This document shows positions 10,750-63,637 of a stretch of DNA of 64,000 nt, piece after piece. The stretch is taken from positions 186,001 through 250,000 of the IMG/VR virus record IMGVR_UViG_3300023174_000042. One strand, written 5' to 3'. The notes under the pieces are model-generated. The model did not search any database and was not told where the DNA came from. It saw nothing but the letters and a program-made list of their open reading frames with translations. The translations under genes were made by a program, and so were the position numbers. How positions within the stretch are numbered: the stretch's first letter is position 1; each line of letters starts with the position of its first letter.

Positions 10750-12792
10750 ATGTTAGAATTTATGGACGAAGGAAATGACAAATCTAAAAAAAAGAGTGAT
10801 AGCACAACTCCTGTTTTAGATAATTTTAGTAAAGACTTGAATAAGTTAGCACAAGAAGGAAAATTGGATCCTGTTATCGGAAGAAAAAAAGAAATTTTAA
10901 GAATTGCTCAAATTCTTTCAAGGAGGAAAAAAAATAATCCAATCATAATCGGTGAACCTGGAGCAGGAAAAACGGCAATTGTAGAAGGTTTAGCAATGAT
11001 GATTCATAATGGTGAATGTCCCAAAAATCTTATGGATAAAAGAATTGTATCATTAGATATGAATTCATTAGTTGCCGGAACTAAATACAGAGGTCAATTT
11101 GAAGAAAGAATGAAAGTAATTATTGAAGAATTACAATTGGCTCCAAATATTATTTTATTTATAGACGAAATTCACACCATTGTAGGAGCAGGAAATAGTT
11201 CAGGTTCGTTAGACGCTTCAAACATCTTCAAACCAGCACTTTCAAGAGGAGAAATTCAGTGTATTGGTGCCACAACACTTGACGAATACCGAACAAACTT
11301 TGAAAAAGACGGAGCGCTTGAGAGACGTTTTCAGAAAGTTATAGTTGATCCATCTTCAAAAGAAGAAACATTAGAAATTTTAATGTTAAGTAAATCAAAA
11401 TATGAAGATCACCATAAAGTTACCTATGATGAAAATACTTTAAAAATATTCGTTGAATTAGCAGATCGTTATATCACAGACAGAGAATTTCCTGACAAAG
11501 CATTTGATATATTGGATGAGGTTGGAGCAAGAATGCAAATTGATGTTAAATTACCAAAAGAAATAGAAGATTTAAAAGAAGAAGCAAATAAAATCAAACA
11601 AGAAAAAATAGACGTAATTAAAAAACAAGATTACGAACAAGCGGCCGAACTTCGTGATCGTGAAAGAAATGTTATTTCTAAACTTGATTTAGAGAAGAAA
11701 AAATTTGAGGAATTTTTAAAAAATAGCAAACGAAACATACCGGAAGAACTAATTTATGAAGTAGTATCTAACATGACAAAAATTCCTATTTCTAATATTA
11801 ATGTTGATGAAAAAAATAATTTAATTAATTTGAGTTCAAATTTGAATTCGAAAGTTATTGGTCAAGAAATTGCTGTTAACAAGATTTCAAAAGCAATCAG
11901 AAGAAACAGAATGGGAATCAAAGACCCAAATAAACCGATCGGTTCGTTTATATTTTTGGGGTCAACTGGTGTTGGTAAAACTTATTTAGCAAAACAATTA
12001 GCAAAAGAAATCTTTGGAAGTCCTGATAATATGATTCGAGTTGATATGAGTGAATACCAAGAAAAACACACAATATCGCGGCTTATTGGATCACCTCCAG
12101 GGTATGTTGGTCATGATGATGGGGGTCAATTAACAGAACAAGTAAAAAACAAACCTTACTCTGTTATATTATTTGACGAGATAGAAAAAGCACACAAAGA
12201 CATTTTCTCAACACTTCTTCAGTTGTTAGATGATGGTCATATTACAGATTCATTAGGTCGTAAAATTAACTTCAAAAATTGTTTAATTATTATGACTTCC
12301 AACATTGGAGTAAAAAAATTACAAGATTTTGGAACTGGAGTTGGTTTCAAGACCACAAAAAGTGATGTCGTTTTAGAAGAAGAAAAACAAGACGTTTTGA
12401 AAAAAGAACTAAAAAAGTTTTTTGCACCTGAGTTTTTGAATAGAATTGACGATGTTATTATTTTCAATAGTTTAGAAAAAAGTCATATTGATCAAATTAC
12501 AAAACTTGAAATTGATAAACTATTAAGTAGAGTTTTAGAAAAACATTATATCTTTTCTTACAACGATGATTTAATTGAATATATTTCTAAAGTAGGTTTT
12601 GATGAAACCTTTGGAGCAAGACCAATCAAGAGAGCAATTCAAGAAAAAATTGAAGATTTAATTTCAGAAAAAATATTAATGTCGGAAATTGAAGAAAATA
12701 AGGAATATGTTTTCAAAGTTGAAAATGATGAAATCATCGTAGTTGAAAAAGAAGAAAAACCAAAAAAAAGAAGTAGGAAAAAAAGCGAATAA
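10750..12792 (+). CDS. clpC: ClpC-type AAA+ chaperone lacking the N-terminal Clp repeat domain
   Basis: LDPVIGR, Walker A GEPGAGKT and GSTGVGKT, pore loops AGTKYRG and GYVG, UVR middle domain QDYEQAAELRD, ClpP-docking-type VGF loop, FGARP. Confidence 0.93.
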   Translation: MLEFMDEGNDKSKKKSDSTTPVLDNFSKDLNKLAQEGKLDPVIGRKKEILRIAQILSRRKKNNPIIIGEPGAGKTAIVEGLAMMIHNGECPKNLMDKRIVSLDMNSLVAGTKYRGQFEERMKVIIEELQLAPNIILFIDEIHTIVGAGNSSGSLDASNIFKPALSRGEIQCIGATTLDEYRTNFEKDGALERRFQKVIVDPSSKEETLEILMLSKSKYEDHHKVTYDENTLKIFVELADRYITDREFPDKAFDILDEVGARMQIDVKLPKEIEDLKEEANKIKQEKIDVIKKQDYEQAAELRDRERNVISKLDLEKKKFEEFLKNSKRNIPEELIYEVVSNMTKIPISNINVDEKNNLINLSSNLNSKVIGQEIAVNKISKAIRRNRMGIKDPNKPIGSFIFLGSTGVGKTYLAKQLAKEIFGSPDNMIRVDMSEYQEKHTISRLIGSPPGYVGHDDGGQLTEQVKNKPYSVILFDEIEKAHKDIFSTLLQLLDDGHITDSLGRKINFKNCLIIMTSNIGVKKLQDFGTGVGFKTTKSDVVLEEEKQDVLKKELKKFFAPEFLNRIDDVIIFNSLEKSHIDQITKLEIDKLLSRVLEKHYIFSYNDDLIEYISKVGFDETFGARPIKRAIQEKIEDLISEKILMSEIEENKEYVFKVENDEIIVVEKEEKPKKRSRKKSE

Positions 12793-19468: not shown

Positions 19469-20770
19469 TTAGAGAACTTTTTTCATGATATTTTTTATAT
19501 TATGGATTTCATAAATTAATTCTTCATTTATTTCTTTTACTTTTGAAGTTGAAATTGCTGGAGGTGCAATATTTTTTGTCGTCAACGTTCTTTTGATACC
19601 TTCACCAGTTCCCCATTTTTTTAAATCTGAAGAACAATTCGTTGCTATGTTTATTGCTCCAATATCTTTCTTTAATCCATTCACAATACAACCATAATTA
19701 CCATTCATCAAAGTTTGAGCCGTGGCATCAATACCATCAGACTCAGATTTATAATTTCTAACGCCACCTAAACATTTTCCTTCTTTTCTTTTTAAACAAT
19801 TCCAAAAAGAAGATCCTTCTTTTTTTTGTGTTGTATTAAAAGGGTTAAATGTTGATTTAGCACCTTCGGCTTGTCTCCATGCGTAAAAAAATAATAAATT
19901 TTGTGGTGACTCAGGTGCCCCAATTTTTTTTAACACTTGAGAGTAAAACTCATCATCTGTTTGTGCGGGTTTTGTTATTTTATAATCACTTATAGACGTT
20001 GTTTGACTTGTTTGACTTGATTGGTCAGAATCTAATGTTTGCTCTTCTTTAGATGACACAGAAGTGGTCGGTTGATCTTTAAATCCAAAAAACTTTTTCC
20101 ATTGATCACTACCTTTTGAAACACGGTCACTAATACCAAGACTTGAAGTAATCTGACTTACAAAATCGTTAATTGAAAAATCTTTTGTTTTTTTATCTTG
20201 ACTTGATTGACTTGATTGATCTTGACTTGATGTATCATCAGATTCAGGTGCTGAAGTATCTACAGTGATTTTTTCTTTCAAATATGAGTCACAATTTTTG
20301 TCTCTGTTTGGTCCTGATCCACAGAATGTAAAATGCCAAGGTTCTCCAACCGCCTTTCCCTCTCCCCATGTCCAACCATATTTTTCTCCATTCTCTTTAA
20401 TCCATTTTTGAACGTTTGATGGCGATATATCAATTGCTCTACCCCATCCGTGATTTGAACTTCCAGGATAAGCCGCCGCAGTTCCTGCTGTCCCCTTTTT
20501 TCTTTTTTTTCCCGTTTTTTCATAATGGTCAAAATCAAAAATTTTACACTGAACATTCAAAGGTCTATAAGAATCTGATAATTTAACTGAACTTTTTATT
20601 TCACTTGGCATATCAGAATACATTTTTATAAATGCGTTTGCTGCGTCTGTTTGTAATTTATGATTACCAATACCAAGAGATTTTAGTTGGGAATTACTAA
20701 TACATCCACTCGCATCTCCAAAACCTGAGCATGGATCGGAAGAACTACAAGCCGATTTTGTAACTTTCAT
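19469..20770 (-). CDS. two-domain peptidoglycan hydrolase (M15B/VanY-like peptidase plus lysozyme-like domain)
   Basis: SYR...AAYPGSSNHGWGRAID...EPWH (M15B); Ser/Gln linker; AWRQAEG...FNPFNTT...GVRNY C-terminal domain. Confidence 0.8.
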   Translation of the reverse strand: MKVTKSACSSSDPCSGFGDASGCISNSQLKSLGIGNHKLQTDAANAFIKMYSDMPSEIKSSVKLSDSYRPLNVQCKIFDFDHYEKTGKKRKKGTAGTAAAYPGSSNHGWGRAIDISPSNVQKWIKENGEKYGWTWGEGKAVGEPWHFTFCGSGPNRDKNCDSYLKEKITVDTSAPESDDTSSQDQSSQSSQDKKTKDFSINDFVSQITSSLGISDRVSKGSDQWKKFFGFKDQPTTSVSSKEEQTLDSDQSSQTSQTTSISDYKITKPAQTDDEFYSQVLKKIGAPESPQNLLFFYAWRQAEGAKSTFNPFNTTQKKEGSSFWNCLKRKEGKCLGGVRNYKSESDGIDATAQTLMNGNYGCIVNGLKKDIGAINIATNCSSDLKKWGTGEGIKRTLTTKNIAPPAISTSKVKEINEELIYEIHNIKNIMKKVL

Positions 20771-20791
20771 ATAAATAAATACTCTGTTATT

Positions 20792-31865: not shown

Positions 31866-31894
31866 TTTCTTTTATAAATATCAATATTAATGGA

Positions 31895-37796: not shown

Positions 37797-38453
37797 TCAA
37801 TAAAAAGACTTAATATACCACTGTAATATCTCTTTTGTGAGTCTATTTATCCTATTTGTTGCTGATTGCGGTGTAATTTCTTTATTTTGTCGTTCTAAAT
37901 CAGTAATTGACGCTGAAATCATAATATTTCTGACATTTTCACCCATATCTATGATTTTTTCGATCAATTCTTCGTCATTATCGTCTAAATCTCGTTGCAT
38001 TCGGTATAAATCGAAGTATTTTGTTAGATATTCTTTAGTTTGACCTAAAATTTGACCTGATTGTAGCATATTTACTACTCCTAACTCTCTAATTGCCATT
38101 AAAAAGTCTAAAACATATTGTAAATCAGCCTTTTTAAACAATTTTGACCACTCATGGTGTCTAATTAGATCATCTAAGTCAGTAAAACGGGCTTCTTGGA
38201 GGTTTTTTTGATTAAATTCAGGATCTAACATCCAAATATCACCTTGTGGGAGTAAAGATAAAGAAGAAATGACATTTCCATTGTCATCATACCACTCTAC
38301 ATCATACTTATAATTAAATTCTGACCCAAAACCAGGTTGTTCACCAATTTTTTTTACCTTTCCTTTGGTTCCTGTATCAAGATCTTCACCTGGCATGTAT
38401 ATTAATACAATACGATCACCTTCTTTTAACTTAGGATTTTGTTTTTTATTCAT
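37797..38453 (-). CDS. two-module hypothetical protein (SH3-like N-domain)
   Basis: LKEGDRIVLIYM...GTKGKV...VEW...LSLLP; NLQE linker; helical second module. Confidence 0.7.
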   Translation of the reverse strand: MNKKQNPKLKEGDRIVLIYMPGEDLDTGTKGKVKKIGEQPGFGSEFNYKYDVEWYDDNGNVISSLSLLPQGDIWMLDPEFNQKNLQEARFTDLDDLIRHHEWSKLFKKADLQYVLDFLMAIRELGVVNMLQSGQILGQTKEYLTKYFDLYRMQRDLDDNDEELIEKIIDMGENVRNIMISASITDLERQNKEITPQSATNRINRLTKEILQWYIKSFY

Positions 38454-38468
38454 ATAAATAAATATCTT

Positions 38469-40916
38469 TTATCTGATAAGTGTGAAATTTCCTAAAAACT
38501 CTTTAACTTCATCAGTTTTAGGAGATTTAAACCTTAATTTCCAAGTATATATCCCATCTTGACACATAAAATTGTTATAAGTCCCATCCCAACCTTCATA
38601 GGGATTAAAAGATTCCCAAATAATTTGACCCCAACGATTATAAATAACAAAAGTATAGTTAAAAATGTCCACACCACTAGTAATTACTGGTTTAAGTATA
38701 TTATTTCTTTCATCACCGTCAGGAGTAAAGGCATTTGGTATGTAAAATATTTCATTTGGACACAATTCTAAAGTAATTGTAAAGTTTTCTGGGTTAGAAA
38801 CACAACCATTATTCCATCTAACCCCTTGAAAAGTAAAAATTCCATCTGTATTCCATGTATGTGTTAATATATTTGAAGTAATTGTGTCTCCAAACACATA
38901 CCATTGGTTAAAACCTCCCCCAACTGACGATAAATTAAAGAAATCTGTTAGAGTGTCTCCTTCACAAATTTGATGATAAGTAAAATTTTGATCAGAAATA
39001 CCGTTTGTAATTGGTAAAACACTTGGTCTTGGGTAAACTTGAACATGAATGGAATCAAAAAACCAACATCCCGATTGATTATACATGTAATAAACGGTAT
39101 CAATACCAATAAATCCGTTATCAGGACAATATTGACTATTCCAAACATTCAAACCATTAAAAATTCCACCTTGAGGAGTTGCATTTAGGTTAATACAGTT
39201 ATTGTATTCGCAAAACGGACCCATAGGTGTTATATTTGGTATAACATTTAAGTCGTAAATTGTAAAAGTTTGTGGTTGAGATTGACAACCCAACTGATTA
39301 ACACCAATAACTGATAAAGTATTTGCGTAAAGTCCGCTATTTACACCTGAAACATTTAAGTTTATTGAATTTGGAGATTGACCTAAAGTTATAACCCCAA
39401 TTTGTGAAGTCCAATTATATGTTAAATTTAAAAAATTACTTGTAACGTTGTATAAATTACTTGTAGAATTGAAACACACTGTATCAAATCCAGTTATTGG
39501 GTTGATTGTAACTTGTGGTGGGTTATTTAATGTTGTTGTTTGATTAGAAACACACCCATTTAGGTCAGTAACAACAACAGAATAGTTTCCAAAACATAAA
39601 TTAGTCGCTGTTTGTGTTGTTTGACCATTACTCCATAAATAAGTATAAGGAGCAAGACCACTTATAGGGTTAACTGTTGCAGATCCATTACAATCATTAA
39701 AACAAACAGGATCTGTTGGCGTAATTGTTGGTTGTTGTAATGGTGGTGGATTATTTAAAGTTGTTGCTCCATTATAAACACAGCCGGATCCATCAGTTAA
39801 TGTAAATGTATAGTTTCCCGAACAAAGGTTATTTAAAGTTAATGTGTTTCCACCCATATTCCAAATAATATTAAATGGTTGAGTCCCCCCAATAGGAGTA
39901 ACAACAACAGATCCGTTGCAACCATTATTACACAAAGGATCAATTGGTGTAATTGTAGGGGGTGGTAAATTAGGGGTTAAAGTGACATGAATTGTGTCAG
40001 GACCTAACCCTACACCAACATTACAAACGGACCACCCAGCATTACAAGTTGGATATACAGGAATACAAGTATAATACGCTCCTTGTGGTGGAGGATTTAC
40101 AACTATTGATAAACCCGTTCCAATTGAATTAACATTTCCAACCTGAAACCACGTATAAGTCGGAGTTACAGTTGGTCCTTGTGGTGTATAACGATAAGAG
40201 TTATTAATTGTCGACCATTGTGTTGAATTTCTTCCTGGAACTGTAACTGCTGACGTTCCTAATAAATCGTGAATACCTTGAACTGCGGTTCCTCCTGCCC
40301 ACTGCGGACAATTTGGTTTATTTGCAATATGATTTTCAATAATGTTTGTTGATTCATATATTACAATATGAAATGTTCCTTGTAGATTAGTGCATGAAAA
40401 CATTGGGACTCCGACCCAACTAACAACTAATTTTCTACAAGGAGCTGTTCCTGAAACTTGATATTTAATTTGACCTCCAAGACCAGGATTCCAATCTTGC
40501 CAAGGTCCCATAATACAATTTTTTGGTATTGTAATTCCAGCATTCGGAATAGACGCTGATGTAAAAGTTGTTGGCTGATTTGAACTAAATGAAATCCACC
40601 CATTAGACCCGATATAAAATTGATTATAAGTCTGACCATAAAAACAAAAATTAAAACCAATGTTAAATGGACCTGTTTGCGAATCATCGGTTAAAAAAAC
40701 GTTTGTTCCTGTATTATTTTGAGCAACATAAGGGATATTTGTTACTCCGTAAGATGTGGTTTGTTTTGGTTGAGATCCAGGTCCACACTGAGATAAGTCG
40801 GCCGTTAATGTTGTTTGATTTACACCACAAGGTAAAGTTAAATCAGGCCCTAAATACGGACAATACTGTGAGTATATAAAAAGGGGAAACAAAAATAGAA
40901 TTAATAATTTTTTCAT
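38469..40916 (-). CDS. SprB-repeat adhesin with T9SS type-B (gliding-motility-associated) C-terminal domain
   Basis: Signal peptide; SprB-like repeats (C...CNGS..V...GG..P...W...L..G-Y...TD..GC); CTD YIPNAFTPDGDERN...IYNRWG...GWDGTY...GIYTW...FTLIR. Confidence 0.9.
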   Translation of the reverse strand: MKKLLILFLFPLFIYSQYCPYLGPDLTLPCGVNQTTLTADLSQCGPGSQPKQTTSYGVTNIPYVAQNNTGTNVFLTDDSQTGPFNIGFNFCFYGQTYNQFYIGSNGWISFSSNQPTTFTSASIPNAGITIPKNCIMGPWQDWNPGLGGQIKYQVSGTAPCRKLVVSWVGVPMFSCTNLQGTFHIVIYESTNIIENHIANKPNCPQWAGGTAVQGIHDLLGTSAVTVPGRNSTQWSTINNSYRYTPQGPTVTPTYTWFQVGNVNSIGTGLSIVVNPPPQGAYYTCIPVYPTCNAGWSVCNVGVGLGPDTIHVTLTPNLPPPTITPIDPLCNNGCNGSVVVTPIGGTQPFNIIWNMGGNTLTLNNLCSGNYTFTLTDGSGCVYNGATTLNNPPPLQQPTITPTDPVCFNDCNGSATVNPISGLAPYTYLWSNGQTTQTATNLCFGNYSVVVTDLNGCVSNQTTTLNNPPQVTINPITGFDTVCFNSTSNLYNVTSNFLNLTYNWTSQIGVITLGQSPNSINLNVSGVNSGLYANTLSVIGVNQLGCQSQPQTFTIYDLNVIPNITPMGPFCEYNNCINLNATPQGGIFNGLNVWNSQYCPDNGFIGIDTVYYMYNQSGCWFFDSIHVQVYPRPSVLPITNGISDQNFTYHQICEGDTLTDFFNLSSVGGGFNQWYVFGDTITSNILTHTWNTDGIFTFQGVRWNNGCVSNPENFTITLELCPNEIFYIPNAFTPDGDERNNILKPVITSGVDIFNYTFVIYNRWGQIIWESFNPYEGWDGTYNNFMCQDGIYTWKLRFKSPKTDEVKEFLGNFTLIR

Positions 40917-46500: not shown

Positions 46501-46556
46501 ATATTATAAATACAGTAGAAAACAAAAAACCCCACTTGTTATAAATGGTGCCAAAC

Positions 46557-47646: not shown

Positions 47647-47970
47647 TTAATCTTTTGACATTTGTTTAACAAAATAAACATCTCGAATCGGATACCAAAA
47701 CTTATTTTGAATCCAAATTTTAATAACTTCTTTTGCTTTTTCTTCATCCAAGTCTGAGGTCATATCTATTAATTCATCAACATACTTTTTAAAAAAATAA
47801 ACATCTTCACTTCTTTCACTATAAGTAAAAATTCTAATATCCCCAATATAATATAGTTTATAACCTCTTTCAGATTTTTCTTTATTTAATTCAATACCTT
47901 TAAGTATTAAATCCAAACTCTTCAAGTAGAATAACAGATTTAGTTGCGATTCTGAAATAATAATTTTCAT
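47647..47970 (-). CDS. tagged hypothetical protein
   Basis: MKIIISESQ tag, TATTTAT upstream. Confidence 0.75.
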   Translation of the reverse strand: MKIIISESQLNLLFYLKSLDLILKGIELNKEKSERGYKLYYIGDIRIFTYSERSEDVYFFKKYVDELIDMTSDLDEEKAKEVIKIWIQNKFWYPIRDVYFVKQMSKD

Positions 47971-48036
47971 ATAAATAAATATAGTGTTCGACCTCTTTTT
48001 TTAATGAACCATTTTAATAAGTTATAATATAAAACA

Positions 48037-54029: not shown

Positions 54030-54905
54030 TCATACAAAATATAACCTTAAATATTCTGATCTTATTGTATCTATGATTGGGTAACCGCCAATTGAAGAAA
54101 TTATAAGTTCTAATTCATTGTTTAAATCATTAAGTTCTCCTTTTTTTACGATTTCTCCTAGTAAAACTGGATTTTCGTCTTCCCATCCGCTGTTTGAAGG
54201 AAAAGGTTTATATTCATGATACTCTCTCCACCGTTTTTCTCCCCACTTTTCATCTACTTTTAATTTGCCGTGAATTGTTATTTTATGAAAGAATTCATCA
54301 TAACTAATATGATTTATTTCTATTTTTTTAAACCACTTAAATTTTTTTGGTATTATTTTATTTATTACCGTTTCTACATTAAAATCTTCTTCTGAATTTT
54401 TGGCTTCTTTTAATGTTTTATTTTTTTTTTTAACACAATTAGGGTATCTTTTACCAAACATAGTTTTCATTCCTTTTTGAGTATATCCTTTCCAACATTT
54501 TTCTGTAAGTTCGCCTTCTTTCATTTCTTGTTGGTTATCAGACATACTTCCCACTATTTGATTATATCTTTCTTTTATTCTACTACCATAATGTCTAAGA
54601 AGTGGTTTTCTAATTTTATCATAATAGAAATCGTCGTCCTCAAAATATATACGGTTATCATTGGTGAAATAATCTTGTTCTAAATATGTTACCATCTCGT
54701 CAATAACAAATTTCGCAAATAACCATAGAGTGGTTCCTTTTTCTTTATATATAACAGAATTTGGGTTTTCCATTGATTCACTCATTCTATCTAATGCGGA
54801 TTCAAATGCCTCTTCTATAATTTCAGTTGATATTCTTCTTATAATAACAGGAGGTATATGTGTTTCTTCTCTTAATACTTTTCTGATATGTTCTTGTAGG
54901 TTCAT
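54030..54905 (-). CDS. tagged multi-module protein
   Basis: MNLQEHIRKVLRE tag; internal CWKGYTQKGMKTMFGKRYPNCVK mini-module bounded by LTE and LKE. Confidence 0.8.
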   Translation of the reverse strand: MNLQEHIRKVLREETHIPPVIIRRISTEIIEEAFESALDRMSESMENPNSVIYKEKGTTLWLFAKFVIDEMVTYLEQDYFTNDNRIYFEDDDFYYDKIRKPLLRHYGSRIKERYNQIVGSMSDNQQEMKEGELTEKCWKGYTQKGMKTMFGKRYPNCVKKKNKTLKEAKNSEEDFNVETVINKIIPKKFKWFKKIEINHISYDEFFHKITIHGKLKVDEKWGEKRWREYHEYKPFPSNSGWEDENPVLLGEIVKKGELNDLNNELELIISSIGGYPIIDTIRSEYLRLYFV

Positions 54906-54906
54906 A

Positions 54907-55344
54907 TTAACAATCTCCTATACCATAAAAAATGCAGTCAATAAGTTCTGCATCATTTTTATCCCATATATAAACCATAGAATCATTATCATTCATTCTA
55001 TCCCTACATAATCTATGGTGTCCATCTACTACAATTAGTTTTCCCTTGTGTTTGTATAAATGAATATCTTTTTTATCATATGTTTCATCGGACATATCAT
55101 TTACGTAGTCCATATTAATATCTTTTTGAAGACTATAAACTTTTTTTGTTGGTGACAATCTTTGTTTTTTTGGGTTAAGTGTGTGTATTAATTCATCACT
55201 ATCATTTACCACCATATCAAAAATGTTTGTGGATTCTAAATCTTTTTTTAATTCAGGTTCGTATATAATTCCACAGTCTTTATGACTTTCGGTTATCATC
55301 CACATCATTGATTTCATTCTTGATATTTGTTCTTGTAGATTCAT
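54907..55344 (-). CDS. tagged ParB/Srx-like domain protein
   Basis: MNLQEQISRMKSMMWMITE tag; SLQ...LIVVDGHHRL. Confidence 0.75.
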   Translation of the reverse strand: MNLQEQISRMKSMMWMITESHKDCGIIYEPELKKDLESTNIFDMVVNDSDELIHTLNPKKQRLSPTKKVYSLQKDINMDYVNDMSDETYDKKDIHLYKHKGKLIVVDGHHRLCRDRMNDNDSMVYIWDKNDAELIDCIFYGIGDC

Positions 55345-55345
55345 A

Positions 55346-55942
55346 TTATAAATCACTTTTAACCATATTATAGAAATACTCACTAACCTTTTCAGGTGAG
55401 TTTATATTCATTCTTCTCATTTGATTTTTATGTTGTTGAACCATCATAGATACTTGTTGTATTGGAAGGTTCTTATACATTTGTGGTGATCTAAAATTTT
55501 TACTTATCAGATCTTTTTTTTGTAGTTGTCTTATTTTTCTTCCTGCGAACTCATCGGCAACTTCTTCTGTATGTTTCATAAAGTCGGCAGCTTCCTCATT
55601 GGATAGTTCCCCAATATAACAATCATACATTATATTTTCACCATACTTTTTAAATTGATATTGGTGAGAAATCTCGTGGAAGATAACAAATAACGCATCT
55701 TCCAATCTACGACTAAGAATTTGTTTGTTGATCAAAACAACATCGTGTAATGCCAAACCTAAAACAGGTATTTTGAAATTGGAAAACTCAATTTTTTTAC
55801 AATCTGAATTCTCAATAAATTTAACAACCTCATCTTTTAACTCATCTGAAATATTAAAAGCATCGGACAACTCATTTATAAAACTTGATATTCCTTCAGT
55901 TTCTTCCTTTAATATTCTTCTTATTTGTTCTTGTAGGTTCAT
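55346..55942 (-). CDS. tagged zinc metallopeptidase-like protein
   Basis: MNLQEQIRRILKE tag; VIFHEISHQYQ...EEVADEFA. Confidence 0.75.
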   Translation of the reverse strand: MNLQEQIRRILKEETEGISSFINELSDAFNISDELKDEVVKFIENSDCKKIEFSNFKIPVLGLALHDVVLINKQILSRRLEDALFVIFHEISHQYQFKKYGENIMYDCYIGELSNEEAADFMKHTEEVADEFAGRKIRQLQKKDLISKNFRSPQMYKNLPIQQVSMMVQQHKNQMRRMNINSPEKVSEYFYNMVKSDL

Positions 55943-55955
55943 ATCAAATAAATAT

Positions 55956-56213
55956 CTAAAAAACTTTAAATTGACAGGTGATATAAAAATCAAATGGAAA
56001 CATATTTGACATATCTTCTTCTAATTGTTTTAGTATATTCAACTCTCTTCCTTTTGTTCCAAAAAACTTATGAGCTTTTTGTGCTGTATTGCAGTGCAAA
56101 GTAATAAAAACAATTTTTTGATTGTCGTTATATCTAAATTTTAAATCATCATAATCATGTGGAACAATTAACTTAAAATAATCTAATATGACTTTATCTA
56201 ATTTATTTTCCAT
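55956..56213 (-). CDS. hypothetical protein
   Basis: 85 aa; FFGTKG may be a KH-like GxxG loop (weak). Confidence 0.55.
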   Translation of the reverse strand: MENKLDKVILDYFKLIVPHDYDDLKFRYNDNQKIVFITLHCNTAQKAHKFFGTKGRELNILKQLEEDMSNMFPFDFYITCQFKVF

Positions 56214-56500
56214 GATCCATATTTGTATTCTTTAATTATTGGTTTTATATCAATCTTTGGATAATTTATATATTCAACCAATAATTTAACTTTAAAATTA
56301 GGTAAGTATTTTTTTATTTGAACTCTGACATATCTAATGTCATCTTCGCTATTGTATTTTGCGTTATCGTATTTTATATTACTAAATTTAAGATCGTTAG
56401 TTAACACAATTTTATATGATCCATCTTCTTGTAAAGAAATTTGCATAGGTATATCAACGTCATCAAACAAGGATTCTATATATTTGGTTAAGTCTTTCAT
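56198..56500 (-). CDS. hypothetical protein
   Basis: 100 aa ORF. Confidence 0.6.
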   Translation of the reverse strand: MKDLTKYIESLFDDVDIPMQISLQEDGSYKIVLTNDLKFSNIKYDNAKYNSEDDIRYVRVQIKKYLPNFKVKLLVEYINYPKIDIKPIIKEYKYGSWKIN

Positions 56501-56606
56501 TATTGCTAAAATAAAAAAAATCCCCCAATTTTACAAGTGGAGGAATATAGTTATTTATCTTTTATTTTTTTGAAACAAAAAAAATATTTCTTTACTGAAA
56601 TTTATT

Positions 56607-57170
56607 TTAACTATCACGATCAAAATGATTTTTTATTTTTTGATAAGTTTTAGGAGAAAGAACCCATGAAATATTTTCCACCACATCTTCGGGTAACTCT
56701 TCTTCCATTTTATTATTTATTTCAGTATTTAAATAAGCCTTTATTCCATCAATAGAAAACCATTTAATATCGTCTTCATTAAAGTTTGATGTCATTCCGT
56801 ATAAAACATCTATTTTTTGATTTTTAGGTAAGTTTTCCACATTCGGTAAATCGATATATTCTGATGTTAAATTTTCAATTAATTTATTAACTTCATCACA
56901 TCTAACTTTTTTTACGTTACAATATTTTAGAATTTTTGATACTTCATCTTCATCAAGATCAAATGGATACTTATATTTTTTTGATACATTTGTTCCATAC
57001 TTTTGATCAAATTCTAATGCTGGTTTGCTATTAACATCAATCCAAGTTTCTTCATCCCAACTTGGTAAATCATCTTTTTTTGTTTTAAATAGATTTGAAA
57101 CAAAATCAAAAATTCCTTCATTTAATCCCATTAACTCTCGGGTCCTTTTTAATTCTTCATTTAAATTCAT
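56607..57170 (-). CDS. tagged hypothetical protein
   Basis: Probable start MNLNEELKRTRELMGLNE. Confidence 0.75.
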   Translation of the reverse strand: MNLNEELKRTRELMGLNEGIFDFVSNLFKTKKDDLPSWDEETWIDVNSKPALEFDQKYGTNVSKKYKYPFDLDEDEVSKILKYCNVKKVRCDEVNKLIENLTSEYIDLPNVENLPKNQKIDVLYGMTSNFNEDDIKWFSIDGIKAYLNTEINNKMEEELPEDVVENISWVLSPKTYQKIKNHFDRDS

Positions 57171-57198
57171 AACAATAAATATCTTTAAAATTATTAAA

Positions 57199-60100
57199 CT
57201 AATCCCAATAACCAATTTGAATTGTTTCCATCATCCAAGAAAGAATTGATAATAACTCTTCATTAGTTAAGCTGTTAATTGTTGTTAGGTATTGGTCTTT
57301 TGTTATCCTCTGACCATAATTATCTTCATAATATTCCCATATTTCAACAGCAATTTGGTCGCTATCTTGAACCATAATATCATAAATTAATTTGGTATTA
57401 CTTAGTCGTATTTTTAGACCAAAAAGAGAACCACTATTTTTACTACTCATCCCATCATGTTCTAAAACATATTCTCTAATATATTGTTTAATTATTTTTT
57501 TTGGATTGTCTATTTTATTTAAAATTGATTTGACTTGATTGAAGTCTAATCCTGACATTTCAATAAAGTTGTATAATCCGTCTTTTTCTATAATTTTTTG
57601 TAATGATTGTTTTTTATTATCCGATTCATTTATATTTTTATCAAAATGTATGTGATATTTGAAATTAAGTGGAAATATATCAAGATCCTCCATAACTTGT
57701 TTTCCTACTTTTTTAATAACTGAGTTAATTCCACCACCCAATTTGACGGACTCAACTGGATCAAAAAATATATTTACAATAACATCATCAAATTGTTCAT
57801 CGTAATATAACATGAATTTTTTTACACTCAGATATTCGTTGGAGTTTAAATAATCTTCTACATTTTGAATCAATTTATTAAACTTTCTTTCTTGTTTAGA
57901 TTCGTCAGATTCGTTTATAACATTACCTTCATCATCATATTTTATTTTTTGAACATCAATATAAAGGTCTGCATTTTTATATTTCCAATCCCAACCGTAA
58001 CCCCACCATGGAGATAAAATAACACCATCTCCTGTCAGTTCCATAATTTCATCTATTATTTTATGTGTAAACCAATTATCGTAGTTTGCTGCGGTATCTT
58101 CCACATCATGAAAGACTTTGATAAGTGGTTTTCCTTGATAATTTGTATCGACTTCAATAAATTCAACCTCATCAAAAAGATTATAAATCATTTCTTTTAC
58201 TAACTTAAGTTTTTTATCTTCTGATTTATTTTCTGATTCCATCAAATCATCTATTTTTTGACATTTTGTTGTGTCATACGCTAAATAAAGATTATCAACA
58301 ATTGGAAAAAAATCTTTTATCATTTTTTTTATCTCGGTTCTTGTTTCGTGAAATGTAAAAGGTCTAAATTTGTTTTTTTTGTATTTTAGAATCAATCTTA
58401 AAGAAGGTTTTTCAGAATATTTTGAATCAAAAAAACTATCTATTTCAATCCCACATAACAATTCTTTATCAACGACACTGTATACCATGTCATTTAAAAG
58501 TTTTTCATATTTTGAAAAGTCATTATGTTCAAATTTACTTTCTGATTCCACAAGTTCTGAATCTTCCCTTAATGTTCTTCTATTAGGTGAATCTTCAGGC
58601 CAAGAATTTAAAATATCTTCACTACTTCCTGTCCCTTCATATTTTAAAGTTATCGCCTCTTTTGGGATATCTTGAAATGTTACAATATGTTTTGACCTTG
58701 ACTCAAAATGTCTATCTTTAAACCATTTAACATCTGGAATCTTTGTTGTGTCAATAAACCAAATGTCGTCATCATATGTTGAATCAAACCAAGCTCTTTT
58801 GTTTGTTGAGTTGGTTGCAAAAATTGCTGGTTTACATTTAACCCCATAACCCACATATATTTTATAACATTCTCCGGCTCTTACTTTAAGACCGTTTTCC
58901 ATTATCTTATCTCTGAACTTTGGATTGGATTTATGGACAACAATCTGATTGGGTTTTACTTCTTTACCCGCCGGACTATAATCTTCGTTTTCGTTTAATA
59001 CTTCATCAGAATTTTCTTCATTAAAAAATAAATCCACAATAGTTTTAAGTGAAATTCCTGTGTGGTCAATTTTAATTTTTTCTGTATATTCTCGGTCTGT
59101 ATAATTTAAACCGTCTTCACTATCTATAACTAAACCTTCATCACCATTACCCGTAATATATAAAGGATTGTATAAGATATATTCTTTATTAATTTTCATT
59201 AGATAACAAGGACCATGATTGTTCATAAATCGGTTTAACCAATCATTTGAAATAAAATTAAAAGTTTGCCACGGTAAATCCCAAGCACTTTGAACTAATT
59301 CTATTTTACCATCGAAATCAATTCCTAATTTGTTTTTTATAAAATTCTTATTTTTTTCTTCTAACTTATTTTCATTTAAAAAACTATTTTCTTCTTCATT
59401 ACAGTTCGAAGTTTGTTCTCCACGAACACCAATTACTACTCCTGTATAAGTTGCAATTTCTTTTGAAATGTCATCTAAAACTTCAATATACATGTTTCTT
59501 ATACCTTGTGTCATGGGCCAAAGTTTTGTTCCGTAACCTCCAATAAATAAAACTGTAACTTCAGGTATATTAAAAACTTCGTTTAATGTGATTTCATAAG
59601 AACAAATGATATGATTATATTCAGGAAGTATTAGGTCTTCCATAATCATTTTTGTTATTTTTAAAAGTTTTTTTAAATCCTTTTCACTTTTGTTTGAACT
59701 TTCATTTAAACTTTCAGATTCACCATAAAGTTTGTTGTGTATTCTTATCACATCTTTTTTTGAAAAAGAATATTCATCCTCATGTATATCGACATCTTTT
59801 CCGTTTATTTGTTTAATATCAAAATAATTGGAGTCTTTAAAATTAAGTGTTTTTGTTTTTATTTTTCCTGTGGTATTATCGTTTTGAATTACGGCGATTA
59901 TGGATTTTAAAGTTTCATTTTCACTTGGACTTAATTTATCTTCGTCATAAATAAGATTTAATTCAGGCCAAGAATTTGTTTCCGATATATTTTTTCTAAT
60001 GTTTATTATTTCATACTGAAGTGGAAATACGATAGGTTTTGGGTCTCTGAAATAATCATATACTGAAAAATCAACAACACCTGTTAAATCATCTAATATT

Positions 60101-60255
60101 TCAGAAAATTCAGGATCATTCTTGAATGCTTTTTTGAGGTTTTTTAATCCTCCAACCATGTCAATAGCATCAAAGATACCATTATCTTCAATAACTTGTT
60201 TCAACTCTTGTTGGAGTCTATTTTCTTTTAAGATATGTCTAATCAGTTCTCTCAT
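57199..60255 (-). CDS. tagged multi-module polyprotein containing an ADP-ribosyltransferase-like domain
   Basis: 1018 aa; MRELIRHILKE tag; about eight modules separated by LNE/LRE/LME/INE linkers; VVHKS...IMENGL...IFAT...DIPKEAI. Confidence 0.8.
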   Translation of the reverse strand: MRELIRHILKENRLQQELKQVIEDNGIFDAIDMVGGLKNLKKAFKNDPEFSEILDDLTGVVDFSVYDYFRDPKPIVFPLQYEIINIRKNISETNSWPELNLIYDEDKLSPSENETLKSIIAVIQNDNTTGKIKTKTLNFKDSNYFDIKQINGKDVDIHEDEYSFSKKDVIRIHNKLYGESESLNESSNKSEKDLKKLLKITKMIMEDLILPEYNHIICSYEITLNEVFNIPEVTVLFIGGYGTKLWPMTQGIRNMYIEVLDDISKEIATYTGVVIGVRGEQTSNCNEEENSFLNENKLEEKNKNFIKNKLGIDFDGKIELVQSAWDLPWQTFNFISNDWLNRFMNNHGPCYLMKINKEYILYNPLYITGNGDEGLVIDSEDGLNYTDREYTEKIKIDHTGISLKTIVDLFFNEENSDEVLNENEDYSPAGKEVKPNQIVVHKSNPKFRDKIMENGLKVRAGECYKIYVGYGVKCKPAIFATNSTNKRAWFDSTYDDDIWFIDTTKIPDVKWFKDRHFESRSKHIVTFQDIPKEAITLKYEGTGSSEDILNSWPEDSPNRRTLREDSELVESESKFEHNDFSKYEKLLNDMVYSVVDKELLCGIEIDSFFDSKYSEKPSLRLILKYKKNKFRPFTFHETRTEIKKMIKDFFPIVDNLYLAYDTTKCQKIDDLMESENKSEDKKLKLVKEMIYNLFDEVEFIEVDTNYQGKPLIKVFHDVEDTAANYDNWFTHKIIDEIMELTGDGVILSPWWGYGWDWKYKNADLYIDVQKIKYDDEGNVINESDESKQERKFNKLIQNVEDYLNSNEYLSVKKFMLYYDEQFDDVIVNIFFDPVESVKLGGGINSVIKKVGKQVMEDLDIFPLNFKYHIHFDKNINESDNKKQSLQKIIEKDGLYNFIEMSGLDFNQVKSILNKIDNPKKIIKQYIREYVLEHDGMSSKNSGSLFGLKIRLSNTKLIYDIMVQDSDQIAVEIWEYYEDNYGQRITKDQYLTTINSLTNEELLSILSWMMETIQIGYWD

Positions 60256-60899
60256 TAATATAATCCTCTTAATCTATCATACTCAACGTTACGAAGTTTT
60301 TCTAAATATGTTTTTTCAATCCATCCTGGACTTTCTTCTTCTTGTTTCATTATGGCATCTCTTCTAAAAAGTGTGGTTTTAAGAATAAGTTCTATCATAT
60401 CCTCCTCAGTCACGCCTTCAGGTTTTGTCATTGGTGGAACACAAGTTTGAGCATCTCTATCATCTATATTAAATTCAGAAATATGAATGTCATTTCTACC
60501 CATCTTACTTTGAATTTCACCTAAATAGGTGTCGTCAAACCATTCTTCAAAAAGGTATTTTAAGTAACTTGCTCTAACAGGAATATCAGACATCAACTCT
60601 TTAAATATATCATTTGGAATATAAATTGAACCTGATTCAAAATCTCTTTCTTCAGTTTTTCTTCTATCGTCAAAAACATCACTATTATCTTCAAAAAATA
60701 ATATAAATTTCATTATTTCTTTTCCATGATTACACCATTCAAAATCATGTCTTGTTTCCCACGATTTGTCATGATACATTTTTGCACCATCAAAATAGTT
60801 GTTTAACCACCTATAAACAAGTTGTTCTACCTTTGGTGTAGGTTTAGAATATTTTCTAGTAACCTCATCTTCTAATATTAATTTAATTAAATTTCTCAT
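60255..60899 (-). CDS. tagged hypothetical protein
   Basis: MRNLIKLILE tag. Confidence 0.8.
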   Translation of the reverse strand: MRNLIKLILEDEVTRKYSKPTPKVEQLVYRWLNNYFDGAKMYHDKSWETRHDFEWCNHGKEIMKFILFFEDNSDVFDDRRKTEERDFESGSIYIPNDIFKELMSDIPVRASYLKYLFEEWFDDTYLGEIQSKMGRNDIHISEFNIDDRDAQTCVPPMTKPEGVTEEDMIELILKTTLFRRDAIMKQEEESPGWIEKTYLEKLRNVEYDRLRGLY

Positions 60900-61333
60900 C
60901 TAAATTTAAATCTATCTGGTTCTAATTTTTTTATATCGTTAAATTGATCTTTAACCGTTAAATGCTCAGGAAGCATTTCATAAATGTCATTTAATTCTTG
61001 TTTTATTTTTTTATAATCTTCAAACATTTCATCACTTGTCATTTCATTTTTAATATTTAATATTGAAACGGCATATGGATAATCTTCGTTGGATAATTCA
61101 TTTTGGTATCTTTTGTGATAGGGGTTTAAGTCACTATTATAAAATTCTTTTAGTTTTTTTATATCACAAATAATATTAATATCAATTGAAAAATTACCAT
61201 CATTACCTAATTCCCACCCAATGATAAATGGATAAGTTTTTTTTATTATTTTAATTACAAGGTCAATTCCTTTTTCAAGAGTTTTTGAATCATCCGTTTC
61301 TTCTTTTAATATATGTCTAATCAGTTCTTTCAT
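60896..61333 (-). CDS. tagged hypothetical protein
   Basis: MKELIRHILKEET tag. Confidence 0.8.
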   Translation of the reverse strand: MKELIRHILKEETDDSKTLEKGIDLVIKIIKKTYPFIIGWELGNDGNFSIDINIICDIKKLKEFYNSDLNPYHKRYQNELSNEDYPYAVSILNIKNEMTSDEMFEDYKKIKQELNDIYEMLPEHLTVKDQFNDIKKLEPDRFKFR

Positions 61334-61655
61334 TACACATTACTTGTTCTAAAAACTTTTTAATTGTTCTAACTATTTTTTGTCTGTCAGGATCATTCTC
61401 ATTTGAGAAATTATCAACAGGTTCAATAACATTATTTTCTTGTAACATATTCAAAATTTTTTGTATTTGTCTTTTTTTATTATCAAAATTAGAAATTGAG
61501 TAATATTTATCATCTATATTAAAGTAAATTGTTTCGAATTTGAATGTTTCGAGATCAATTTCTTTTTTTTGATATCTTCGAAGCAAAAAATTCATAACTA
61601 TCTGATCAATCTCTTCAGTTTCTTCTTTTAATATATGTCTAATTAACTCTTTCAT
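61317..61655 (-). CDS. tagged hypothetical protein
   Basis: MKELIRHILKEET tag. Confidence 0.8.
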   Translation of the reverse strand: MKELIRHILKEETEEIDQIVMNFLLRRYQKKEIDLETFKFETIYFNIDDKYYSISNFDNKKRQIQKILNMLQENNVIEPVDNFSNENDPDRQKIVRTIKKFLEQVMCNERTD

Positions 61656-62089
61656 TATGCGTCGTATTCGTCTTGAAATAATATAAACTCTAAAGTTATC
61701 ATAAATGGTTCATCGCCGTAACTATTCCATTTCATAGCAATTGGCATGCAACTCATAAACCAATCATTGTCAGGTCCTCTTTTTATTAAACCACCACTTT
61801 CAGTGAATGTATATTGTCCTTGTATTTTATAAACTTCGTCTTCCAATTTATCAATATGTTTTGCAATACCTCCAAAATCATGGTCTTCATAGTATGATTT
61901 TACAATAAGTTTTCCTTCAATATAAGGATGTTTTAAAATAAAACTAATATCTTTTATTTCTATAGAATCAATTTTAGAAGAAACATTACTTTCAAATATG
62001 TATTGAAGTTTTTGCATAGAGTTTTTGAACCTTTCTTCAAGATTGTTATCCTCATCTTCTTTTAATATATTTTTAATTAATTTTTTCAT
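61655..62089 (-). CDS. tagged hypothetical protein
   Basis: MKKLIKNILKE tag; TATTTATA upstream, heading the operon. Confidence 0.8.
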   Translation of the reverse strand: MKKLIKNILKEDEDNNLEERFKNSMQKLQYIFESNVSSKIDSIEIKDISFILKHPYIEGKLIVKSYYEDHDFGGIAKHIDKLEDEVYKIQGQYTFTESGGLIKRGPDNDWFMSCMPIAMKWNSYGDEPFMITLEFILFQDEYDA

Positions 62090-62140
62090 ATTTTATAAAT
62101 ACTTGAAATTATATAAAAACAAAAAAATCAATTTATGATT

Positions 62141-63637
62141 CTAACTGATTTGTCTAATAGCACTTTCTACTTTATCTTGATTTTTTAACTTGGTATTTTT
62201 TCTATCTTTGATTGCCAATTCAATTAATTGTTGATCCGATAGTCCGTTTTTGATTCCATTTTCCAAACTTTCAGCAAATTTTTTGAAAAACCCCGGTCCA
62301 TTCCAACAAGCATATGACATATGAAGAGTTAAACCTGGTATTGATTGAATTTTTTCTTTAGTTTTTGGATCTTTTACAAAATTTGACATATTTTTGTCAA
62401 AAGATCTTTTCATTATTTTAACTGCCAAATTTTTCAAAGATTGTTCTTTGTCTCCACCTCGATATAACCATTTCCATTCTTTACAAAAGTCATCCATGTT
62501 TGACCAAGTGGTATTTGGTCCAACACCATTTGATTTAGCCCCAGCACCATATTTTTCTCCATCTATAATTTGAAAAAATTCTTTACCTTCAGGTGATGAC
62601 TCAATATTTCCGTTATATCTGTCCAATCCAAACATTGTTTCTGTAGATTTTCCCATATTACCACCTGGATGCTTACAAAACGGATTCCAATATCCGCCTT
62701 CAAACTTATCAATCACAATTTTTGTAACATTTTCAAAATTTGACAAATCAACAGCAGATAAATTGTTTTCATCAGATTGACTTTCCTTACATATCTTTTG
62801 AACATCAGATACGTTAAATTCTTTTTTTCCTGTTTTTTCTTCCATAGCACTTTGAGTTTTAGGTCCAAAATATCCATCTTGATTTATACCCAAGCAACCT
62901 TGCACTTGATATATAATTCCATTAGTATTTGGAGATTTATATTTAGTTCCGACATCTTTACAACCTTTTTTAAAATTTGGTCCATCACAATCGGAGTATT
63001 TTTTTAATTTATCTGATATATCACTAACACTAGAACCACCACCTATAAGTGATATATCGTCACTTGTTTCGATTTCAGTTGGTTTGTCTGTCCTATTATA
63101 TTCACCTTTACCTTCATGTGGAGGATAGTTTTTTGGTAAAGAATATTTGTAAAAAAATTGTCTAATATAAACACCATCAGGGTTTTTGAAGTCTAATACT
63201 AATTTGATGTTTTCTGCGTCTTTTTTTTCTAATTTTCTAGTCAAATCATTTATTTGTCTTTCTGCTCTTATGTCTGCTCTGTTTCCTGCGGATCCTCGTG
63301 TAGAGATTCCCATATAAGCAATTCCATCTTTACTTTCATCAATAGTTGCTTCCCAATTTACAGTATAATTTGTAGAATCAACTTTTATATTCAAATTTGT
63401 AATGTCGGGATTAATTCCAGCATCGTAAACTTCTTTTAATTTTTCATTTATTTTTGTTGACATTTTTCCTCCAAAACCATCTGATTTTCTACTTTCAAAT
63501 GAATGTAATGCGTCCGCATCTCCTTTTGGTGCTGTATAACCACCTTTAACAACAATAGGTAATGAAATTGTTTGTTCTTTTAACAGTCCCATTATTGATT
63601 TAATTCTAAAAATTTCTTCGTTAATATAAGGTTTCAT
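62141..63637 (-). CDS. tagged multidomain peptidoglycan hydrolase (PG-binding plus GH108-like lysozyme)
   Basis: INEEIFRIKSIMGLLKE tag; VQGCLGINQDGYFGPKTQSAM; IDKFEGGYWNP...ETMFGL. Confidence 0.7.
   Translation of the reverse strand: MKPYINEEIFRIKSIMGLLKEQTISLPIVVKGGYTAPKGDADALHSFESRKSDGFGGKMSTKINEKLKEVYDAGINPDITNLNIKVDSTNYTVNWEATIDESKDGIAYMGISTRGSAGNRADIRAERQINDLTRKLEKKDAENIKLVLDFKNPDGVYIRQFFYKYSLPKNYPPHEGKGEYNRTDKPTEIETSDDISLIGGGSSVSDISDKLKKYSDCDGPNFKKGCKDVGTKYKSPNTNGIIYQVQGCLGINQDGYFGPKTQSAMEEKTGKKEFNVSDVQKICKESQSDENNLSAVDLSNFENVTKIVIDKFEGGYWNPFCKHPGGNMGKSTETMFGLDRYNGNIESSPEGKEFFQIIDGEKYGAGAKSNGVGPNTTWSNMDDFCKEWKWLYRGGDKEQSLKNLAVKIMKRSFDKNMSNFVKDPKTKEKIQSIPGLTLHMSYACWNGPGFFKKFAESLENGIKNGLSDQQLIELAIKDRKNTKLKNQDKVESAIRQIS

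Follow-up and report, generated by a model that had tools for sequence, protein, structure and literature searches.

Head-packaged ADP-ribosyltransferases (ARTs) are predicted to be common in myoviruses (PMC9503650). In phage T4, [LI]xE motifs are recognized by the prohead protease gp21, which cleaves behind their Glu; it processes Alt in this way at ITE-6 and LTE-619 (PMC5694885) and strips the internal proteins of their capsid-targeting sequences (PMC5694885; PMC3012670). Polyvalent proteins, which are large multi-module proteins of phages and conjugative elements, have been proposed to be delivered along with DNA, and ARTs are the commonest of their modifying domains (Iyer et al. 2017, PMC5512222). 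In the RNA 2'-phosphotransferase Tpt1, three of the four essential residues (the Arg-His-Arg of the tetrad) lie in an N-terminal winged-helix RNA lobe, and the HGT motif has the same adenosine-ribose role as in diphtheria toxin (PMC6333775). Here we describe an ART-like domain in a 1018-amino acid (aa) modular protein, P0001, or polyprotein, translated from one open reading frame (ORF; 57199-60255) in a stretch of 64,000 nucleotides (nt) of virus record IMGVR_UViG_3300023174_000042 (the window; bases 186001-250000 of the record). The domain occupies aa 423-547 (58615-58989). Features lie on the minus strand and are numbered within the window, unless another strand or the whole record (G000) is given. 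To our knowledge, few families of head-packaged ARTs have been defined, and almost none outside cultured phages.

The reading that we favor, and consider likely on balance, is that P0001 carries a minimal ART-fold domain of an uncatalogued phage family, which would act as a packaged and injected enzyme using nicotinamide adenine dinucleotide (NAD+) from within a polyprotein. The predicted model makes it very probable that aa 423-547 adopt the ART fold, and the nearest known relative of the domain was shown to be the NAD+-binding lobe of the RNA 2'-phosphotransferase Tpt1/KptA. A first AlphaFold model, based on 21 close relatives, was mediocre (pLDDT 71) yet already pointed to Tpt1; the AF2 model calculated with a 105-sequence alignment reached a pLDDT of 90.4 and a pTM of 0.83. 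A Foldseek search of the PDB returned Tpt1/KptA structures at ranks 1-18 (E from 2e-4, TM by query 0.49-0.57), with ART toxins, DarT, TreX and Arr below them. An exhaustive VIA-align comparison with 48,161 representative PDB chains gave a list whose best 50 matches all belong to the ART superfamily. At its top stands TkoKptA (Z 10.0, 95 residues aligned), with model residues 1-117 falling on chain residues 73-180, the NAD+ lobe, and the other Tpt1 structures score 9.3 (mouse TRPT1), 7.7 (Runella Tpt1) and 7.5 (yeast Tpt1). Next come Scabin (7.2), TreX (6.7), CC0527 (6.5), pertussis S1 (6.0), DarT (5.7), Arr (5.5) and PARPs (3.8-4.6); PltA, CARDS toxin, TreTu, pierisin and diphtheria toxin are further members of the superfamily among these 50. 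Z values of 7-8 are common for models without clear relatives, and the strength of the fold assignment therefore derives from the uniformity of the list together with the two values above 9. Searches of the ESM Atlas and BFVD returned PTS_2-RNA and viral Tpt1 entries alongside unnamed phage proteins, the Atlas look-alike scores falling within the range graded as leads only.

Profile-profile comparison (hhalign) with eight Tpt1 genes from Bacteroidota genomes agrees with the structural search: whole Tpt1 is matched with 91% probability (E 1e-6), and its NAD+ lobe taken by itself with 93% (E 3e-7). The dependable part of this alignment is ungapped; it begins with the strand that precedes the His and ends at the G-L behind the following helix. 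Within it, H441-K-S443 (58927-58935) in the first core strand corresponds to HGT in Tpt1 and diphtheria toxin. This supplies ART position 1, at which a His (or Arg), presented as H-x-[ST] in that strand, binds the NAD+ ribose in the superfamily. Residue roles could be read from the crystal structure of Clostridium thermocellum Tpt1 (CthTpt1; PMC6333775). H441 and S443 correspond to CthTpt1 H101 and T103, which hydrogen-bond the adenosine ribose 2'-OH; F447 to F107, which touches the ribose and adenine; I451 to I111, which stacks on the adenine; and G455 to G115, whose carbonyl accepts adenine N6. The helix F447-R448-D-K-I451-M-E-N-G455-L456 (58888-58917) carries F447, I451 and G455 at the CthTpt1 spacing from the His, while its R448 is invariant in the family yet has no Tpt1 counterpart. 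In the relative P0381, the Pfam PARP model comes just short of its threshold over the same region (25.4 bits against a cut-off of 26.7, E 1.2e-5), and one family member weakly matches the PHROG 'RNA 2'-phosphotransferase' (E 7e-4). The positions that contact adenosine in Tpt1 are among the best conserved of the phage family, which indirectly supports NAD+ binding; judging from the sequence, the domain probably binds NAD+. A reading of this DNA made earlier from the sequence alone (the sequence-only reading) had proposed an ART-like module, and both the structure search run on the model and the hhalign result bear this out, with Tpt1/KptA as the closest match. The same reading had called the motifs Tpt1/KptA-like. 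This holds for H-x-S and I-x3-GL, which align without gaps on the HGT and the adenine-binding helix of Tpt1, and the likeness is limited to the NAD+ lobe and does not extend to membership of the Tpt1 family.

The domain belongs to a large family with few traces in cellular genomes. Its borders were taken from stand-alone homologues, mostly 134-147 aa in length; the sequence-only reading had placed it at 58580-58985 (aa 424-559), and the stand-alone proteins move the borders to those given above. A search with the domain only found 82 proteins, most of them stand-alone and of this length, and a profile search of 1.84 billion cluster representatives yielded 549 clusters at 50% identity with E<=1e-3, 312 of them with E<=1e-10, in which the domain is solo or fused. 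When one genome from each of 185,579 prokaryotic species was scanned, the single match was a 3.3-kb contig of a metagenome-assembled genome; the family is therefore confined almost entirely to phage and metagenome sequence. No model in Pfam, NCBIfam or PHROGs claims it, and searches of these databases and of PDB sequences (phmmer and profile) with either whole P0001 or the domain gave nothing significant. The best Pfam match, at E 0.01-0.02, is DUF5820 (PF19137), a family of unknown function that is also found below threshold in nine of 105 members (best E 1.9e-4, aa 470-530) and may be a distant cellular or archaeal relative.

Conservation was read from the 105-sequence alignment (A2), in which identities go down to 27-40%. 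H441, R448, I451, D497 and D514 are invariant, and S443, G455, F479, I501, W511, I530, L537 and G541 are conserved in at least 90% of the sequences. The motifs quoted in the sequence-only reading are all found in P0001 (VVHKS at 439-443, IMENGL at 451-456, IFAT at 478-481, IWFID at 498-502 and DIPKEAI at 529-535) and form the conserved core of a real domain family, beyond what chance would give. A possible Zn site made up of C463, C474, H516 and H523 was discarded, as its cysteines are invariant among close relatives only and are lost from the deeper alignment. Family members occur in proteins of up to 2925 aa. Among distant members, a 2925-aa polyvalent protein joins the domain to ART-PolyVal and LPD38 (P0395 and P0352 are examples from such proteins), and others are fused to HD domains (twice), to DUF3990 and, in an Atlas cluster, to GNAT acetyltransferases. 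These partners are the usual company of injected phage effectors (PMC5512222, PMC9503650). An ESM Atlas cluster of 374-aa viral proteins carrying Tad6 (PF25188, Thoeris anti-defense) also appeared among the look-alikes of the domain, both structural (TM by query 0.67) and feature-based (score 0.76); the Tad6 model matched none of the domain members, and no sequence link was found.

Conservation and the model together nominate residues for the remaining active-site positions. ART position 2, where an aromatic residue (Tyr) or S-T-S of the second core strand contacts nicotinamide, may be taken by F479, in the strand A477-I-F479-A-T481 (58813-58827), which is at least 90% conserved, lies on a strand of the model and falls within the PARP match of P0381. 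The hhalign alignment pairs A-I-F-A-T with a different Tpt1 strand than the structural ranges imply. Strand order, as distinct from a computed superposition, favors pairing A-I-F-A-T with the V-H-L-S strand of Tpt1, and I-P-K-E-A-I with V-P-x-K-Y-I, because model residue 117 meets the C-terminus of KptA in the VIA-align result; by this pairing, F479 would take the aromatic second position. Two invariant residues are candidates for ART position 3, the catalytic Glu, Asp or Gln: D497, the last of D495-D496-D497 (58765-58773) at the start of the strand DIWFID, and D514 (58714-58716), at the end of the strand WFKD and before the loop that leads to the strand HIVT.

The protein that contains the domain is built of about eight modules (aa 12-185, 186-295, 296-422, 423-547, 571-673, 674-782, 783-877 and 878-1018), whose borders were defined from the regions of P0001 covered by 119 other listed homologues and by BLAST with each module. 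Large modular homologues number 269 in metagenomes (word search), on contigs of up to 285 kb. The ART-like domain is present in 93 of the 120 listed homologues, and the modules at aa 296-422 and 571-673 are rare. The ART-like module is the only one of the eight with an assignable fold: the seven others matched no known family, and no peptidase module was detected in P0001, in Pfam, PHROGs or NCBIfam. It is not conserved better than the rest of the protein: with a median identity of 78.5%, it resembles the other modules. Several modules begin (aa 186-220, 674-700 and 878-900) with the same K-K-L-K-L-V-K-E-M-I-like helix directly after an [LI]xE-S border, and in relatives such as P0298, P0300 and P0306 this helix directly follows the N-terminal leader described below; since the same helix comes after either, leader and internal linker appear to be interchangeable.

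The module borders are marked by a motif of the kind cut by T4-type prohead proteases. An S or N follows [LI]xE at aa 9-11, 183-185, 293-295, 420-422, 568-570, 671-673, 780-782 and 875-877, that is, at the end of the leader and at every module border, and these sites coincide with borders that were defined independently. P0001 contains five [LI]xE-S against 1.07 expected, a count reached by six of 2000 shuffled sequences. L183-N-E185 followed by S (59701-59709) separates modules 1 and 2, and L293-N-E295 followed by N (59371-59379) separates modules 2 and 3. A predicted protease site, L420-N-E422 (58990-58998), lies directly upstream of the ART-like domain, and two more, L562-R-E564 and L568-V-E570 (58546-58572), lie downstream of it. 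Further along, L671-M-E673 (58237-58245), I780-N-E782 (57910-57918) and I875-N-E877 (57625-57633), each followed by S, mark the borders between modules 5/6, 6/7 and 7/8. In all 63 distinct homologue contexts, whatever the flanking modules, an [LIVM]xE stands no more than 12 aa upstream of the ART-like domain and again shortly downstream.

The genome encodes a protease that could act on these sites. A gp21-type prohead protease gene (Peptidase_S77, 81 bits; G000 184046-184774, just before the window) adjoins the genes for a T4-type portal (gp20; 739-2547; PF07230, E 3e-76), a very acidic scaffold-like ORF (G000 182170-183693) and a gp23-type capsid protein (G000 180236-182143), the last two also just before the window. 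Together with the motifs at the module borders, this agrees with the polyprotein-like character that the sequence-only reading had ascribed to P0001. Within the first 60 residues of the capsid protein there are five [LI]xE; the final one, I-N-E|A, shortly precedes the conserved core, about 20 residues before P-I-V-R-R-V; this region would fit a T4-like propeptide cut off by the prohead protease. By analogy with T4, we lean toward the view that the prohead protease likewise cleaves P0001 and that the protein is packaged in the head.

P0001 begins with an 11-aa leader, MRELIRHILKE (60223-60255), that ends in L-K-E and resembles a capsid-targeting sequence. Nearly all stand-alone copies of the domain have such a leader, of 13-20 residues and typically M-N-L-Q-E-x-I-R-R-I-L-R-E, with the domain directly after it. 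In fusion proteins, the same leader recurs internally, where it links the ART-like domain to what follows, a remnant of the kind that gene fusion would leave; L562-R-E564 of P0001 is what remains of an internal leader that reads LQESIRRILRE in relatives. P0001 is itself part of a block of tightly packed genes (54030-63637), in which a leader ending in [LI]xE was present in 10 of the 12 ORFs read, with starts at 54905, 55344, 55942, about 57170, 60255, 60899, 61333, 61655, 62089 and 63637. Two short ORFs of the block (55956-56213 and 56198-56500) lack it. The leader thus opens at least 10 consecutive genes of the block, while a control on the reversed genome gave 0 matches. It comes in two flavors, M-x-x-L-I-R-x-I-L-K-E-E-T and M-N-L-x-E-x-I-x-R-[IM]-K-x-x-M-G-x-x-x-E, and is conserved as a peptide rather than as DNA, since the codons differ and the upstream DNA is unrelated. 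Elsewhere, leader genes were found at window positions 29539(-) and 51331(-) and at G000 27438(+), 177477(+), 179209(-) and 252778(-), of which those at 177477 and 179209 flank the capsid gene. On an unrelated 58-kb contig, leader genes again form a run that includes a stand-alone ART-like gene. In a related 58-kb contig, a third leader, M-K-x-I-I-T-E-N-K-R, is shared by five small genes near a stand-alone ART-like gene (L016:318-1275 and L016:6799-7454); it contains I-x-E and also opens the ART-like proteins P0317 to P0319. A search of a library of papers for the leader peptide sequence brought up none that contains it.

We propose a model for this protein in which the ART-like domain is one module of a polyprotein made late in infection. 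The 11-aa leader would bring the polyprotein to the prohead core, where the T4-type prohead protease would cut after the Glu of [LI]xE at every module border and set free an ART-like piece about 150 residues long (aa 423-564 or 423-570). Retained in the head, this piece would be injected along with the DNA, in the manner of T4 Alt and the internal proteins. In the cell it would bind NAD+ and transfer ADP-ribose to a host macromolecule, or hydrolyze NAD+, with invariant D497 or D514 in place of the usual catalytic Glu and invariant R448 helping to hold the phosphates. Packaging and injection are inferred by analogy with the T4 capsid-targeting sequence and Alt processing, and the domain would, by a narrow preference, be an active transferase or NADase. 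A broader version of the model is possible, and we put it forward only tentatively: a leader of 11-20 residues ending in [LI]xE may be a general capsid-targeting and processing tag for injected cargo in widespread large freshwater T4-like phages, and the ART-like module a pared-down form of the Tpt1 NAD+ lobe whose active site is H/F/D. The tagged cargo would then comprise at least 10 consecutive genes here, along with polyproteins that arose from fused leader genes and kept the internal leaders as protease-cut linkers. The module would ADP-ribosylate a host or defense target immediately on entry, possibly a phosphorylated nucleic-acid end.

Several observations weigh against the favored reading, some of which suit a different role for the domain. 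No Glu or ExE motif can be placed at the canonical third position. The hhalign comparisons with bacterial PARP-like proteins (3%, still aligning the H-x-S...GL stretch) and with Arr (0.1%) are not significant, and D497 and D514 both stay candidates. The hhalign register after the GL motif conflicts with the structural range, only the first ~30 columns being trustworthy. The arginine cage that holds the NAD+ phosphates in Tpt1 (CthTpt1 R121, R139 and R140) has no conserved counterpart; hhalign sets a gap opposite the invariant Tpt1 Arg, R459 varies within A2, and the acidic D-D-D before DIWFID sits roughly where two of the cage arginines would be, as placed by strand order and not by residue-level superposition. 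An ART fold that binds an adenine nucleotide without being a transferase, as a decoy or inhibitor of NAD+-processing defense enzymes of the host or a sponge for NAD+-derived signals, would account for both the unassignable Glu and the unconserved cage. The Tad6 cluster recovered in both Atlas searches points the same way, as Tad6 blocks the NAD+ site of ThsB (PMC13728456). However, no family member matches the Tad6 model and the Atlas scores are graded as leads only, whereas four polar residues (H441, R448, D497 and D514) are invariant in 105 sequences down to 27% identity, which is more typical of catalysis, and we consider a mere binder unlikely. The kinship with Tpt1 could instead mean that the domain is a Tpt1/KptA-type RNA repair enzyme, which works on RNA in the infected cell by taking off 2'-phosphates or capping 5'-phosphates, and not an injected effector. 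Tpt1/KptA is the best structural and profile match, and large phages encode KptA for tRNA repair (PMC9503650). Against this, the domain starts at the NAD+ lobe and the N-terminal RNA lobe with its Arg-His-Arg is missing; stand-alone members, at only 134-147 aa, carry nothing but the leader in front. The preceding module (aa 296-422), tried as a substitute for the RNA lobe, shows no similarity to it, the fourth Arg is not conserved, and PF01885 matches neither P0001, the domain, the 105 members nor any part of the genome. We therefore reject membership of the Tpt1/KptA family for a domain that is Tpt1-like in fold, on the absent RNA lobe, the unconserved cage and the silence of PF01885, and a role in RNA repair seems very improbable.

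Other observations bear on packaging and on the genomic setting. The P0001 gene and its block lie ~55 kb from the head genes, and distant family members lack the leader. These fit a protein that is not packaged, whose leader and [LI]xE linkers would serve intracellular targeting, turnover or the assembly of a cytoplasmic complex, with the module acting after de novo synthesis like T4 ModA/ModB. Yet the motif fits the specificity of the T4-type protease that the genome encodes, it is found at module borders in every homologue context, the capsid protein carries I-N-E|A before its conserved core, and leader genes flank the capsid gene, all of which make a purely intracellular role quite unlikely and leave packaging and injection as the reading we prefer. 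Three further points count against that reading: there is no MuF or portal fusion, no Macro or other ADP-ribose-handling gene in the genome adds context, and P0001 has no cultured relative, a tblastn search of 50,697 GenBank phage records having come back blank. Among possible companion genes, Alt/VIP2 (PF03496), Macro and Tpt1 (PF01885) have no match across the phage genome; PF03496, which describes the R-S-E clade, is also silent on P0001, whose first-strand residue is His and not Arg.

The virus record is 272,576 bp long and was judged 93% complete. GC content in the window is 25-33%, and a T4-type large terminase is also encoded there. The closest cultured portals are those of Microcystis phage Mel-JY01 (42% identity), Flavobacterium phages (37%) and Rhodothermus phage RM378. 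An 815-aa protein (38469-40916) combines SprB repeats with a PKD-like domain and a CHU_C domain for type IX secretion sorting, which is unusual for a phage; the SprB repeats and the sorting domain hint at a Bacteroidota host. Of ten ORFs neighboring P0001, one had matches in PHROGs, to unnamed families. DNA of the P0001 gene recurs in lake and freshwater metagenomes from 11 studies, and an independent freshwater DNA contig covers 57623-59001 with one difference. The only two contigs of a freshwater metatranscriptome (an RNA library) that map to the gene are short, and both lie within 58546-58875, inside the ART-like module; they are no proof of transcription, as they may come from relatives or from carried-over DNA.

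The window holds several other features. A full-length gene for a ClpB/ClpA-type double AAA+ chaperone (AAA_2, E 1e-66; ClpB_D2-small) lies on the plus strand at 10750-12792, and a 433-aa protein with an N-terminal VanY-type D-Ala-D-Ala carboxypeptidase domain (19469-20770) is possibly an endolysin or a virion-associated wall hydrolase. The octamer TATAAATA occurs 49 times across the window against 13.8 expected, mostly reading TATTTATA along the coding (minus) strand, within the 0-25 nt that precede a start codon. Examples are found at 2568-2575, 20770-20777, 31873-31880, 38453-38460, 46505-46512, 47970-47977 and 62094-62101, and the octamer sometimes forms a near-palindrome, TATTTATAAATA. 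In this phage it may serve as a promoter or mark the start of translation. The idea that TATAAATA is a T4 late promoter upstream of the leader-gene block was set aside, since the octamer mostly reads TATTTATA before minus-strand starts and occurs only once in the block.

This family adds to the known ART-fold proteins a large unnamed group, 549 clusters strong, with almost no members in cellular genomes. Its kinship with the Tpt1 NAD+ lobe suggests a way for a minimal NAD+ module to find new use in the absence of the RNA lobe. The leader and the [LI]xE borders constitute a sequence-based rule with which one might list, with no other data, what uncultured T4-like phages inject. Polyvalent effectors could arise by the fusion of leader-tagged genes and then be split by the prohead protease rather than by an embedded peptidase.

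Compared with the Tpt1/KptA/TRPT1 enzymes (PF01885; PDB 9LD3, 6E3A, 7YW2 and 7KW9), the domain shares with their C-terminal NAD+ lobe the H-x-[ST] strand and the next helix, with F, I and G at identical spacing, and a similar number and order of strands. Unlike them, it has no winged-helix RNA lobe, and hence lacks three of the four essential catalytic residues; it does not conserve the Arg121/139/140 phosphate cage; it has an extra helix (aa 462-468) and an extra N-terminal strand; and it is found almost only in phages and metagenomes, in sequences to which the Pfam model is blind. The small H-Y-[ED] ARTs Arr (PF12120) and PARP (PF00644) have the same fold and a similar H-x-[ST]...GL beginning, but in the domain Phe would stand in for their Tyr, and profile comparisons with them are not significant.

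T4 Alt (Alt/VIP2, PF03496) is comparable as an ART-fold protein of a T4-type phage, flanked here by [LI]xE as at the sites of gp21 trimming, and the life history proposed for the module (head-packed, injected and early-acting) would be the same. Alt nevertheless belongs to another ART clade (R-S-E, about 70 kDa) to which the domain has no sequence relation, and is a single protein, whereas the ART here is a 125-aa module of a polyprotein. Like the polyvalent proteins (ART-PolyVal, PF18760), P0001 is a large multi-module phage protein, and distant relatives of its domain sit in such proteins beside ART-PolyVal and LPD38; the processing of polyvalent proteins is ascribed to an embedded metallopeptidase (MPTase), whereas the borders of P0001 carry prohead protease-type motifs and no peptidase module was detected in it. 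The T4 internal proteins IPI-III offer the closest parallel to the leader, as they too place a short amphipathic N-terminal leader ending in [LI]xE on otherwise unrelated proteins in a genome with a gp21-type protease. The leader described here differs in sequence, measures 11-20 aa, tags many more genes (at least 10 in a row) and recurs inside fusion proteins as a linker. The literature already establishes the general idea that a phage can pack an ART in its head as part of a multi-effector protein. The novelty lies in the domain family, the leader tag and an architecture in which modules are predicted to be joined by protease-cleavable linkers.

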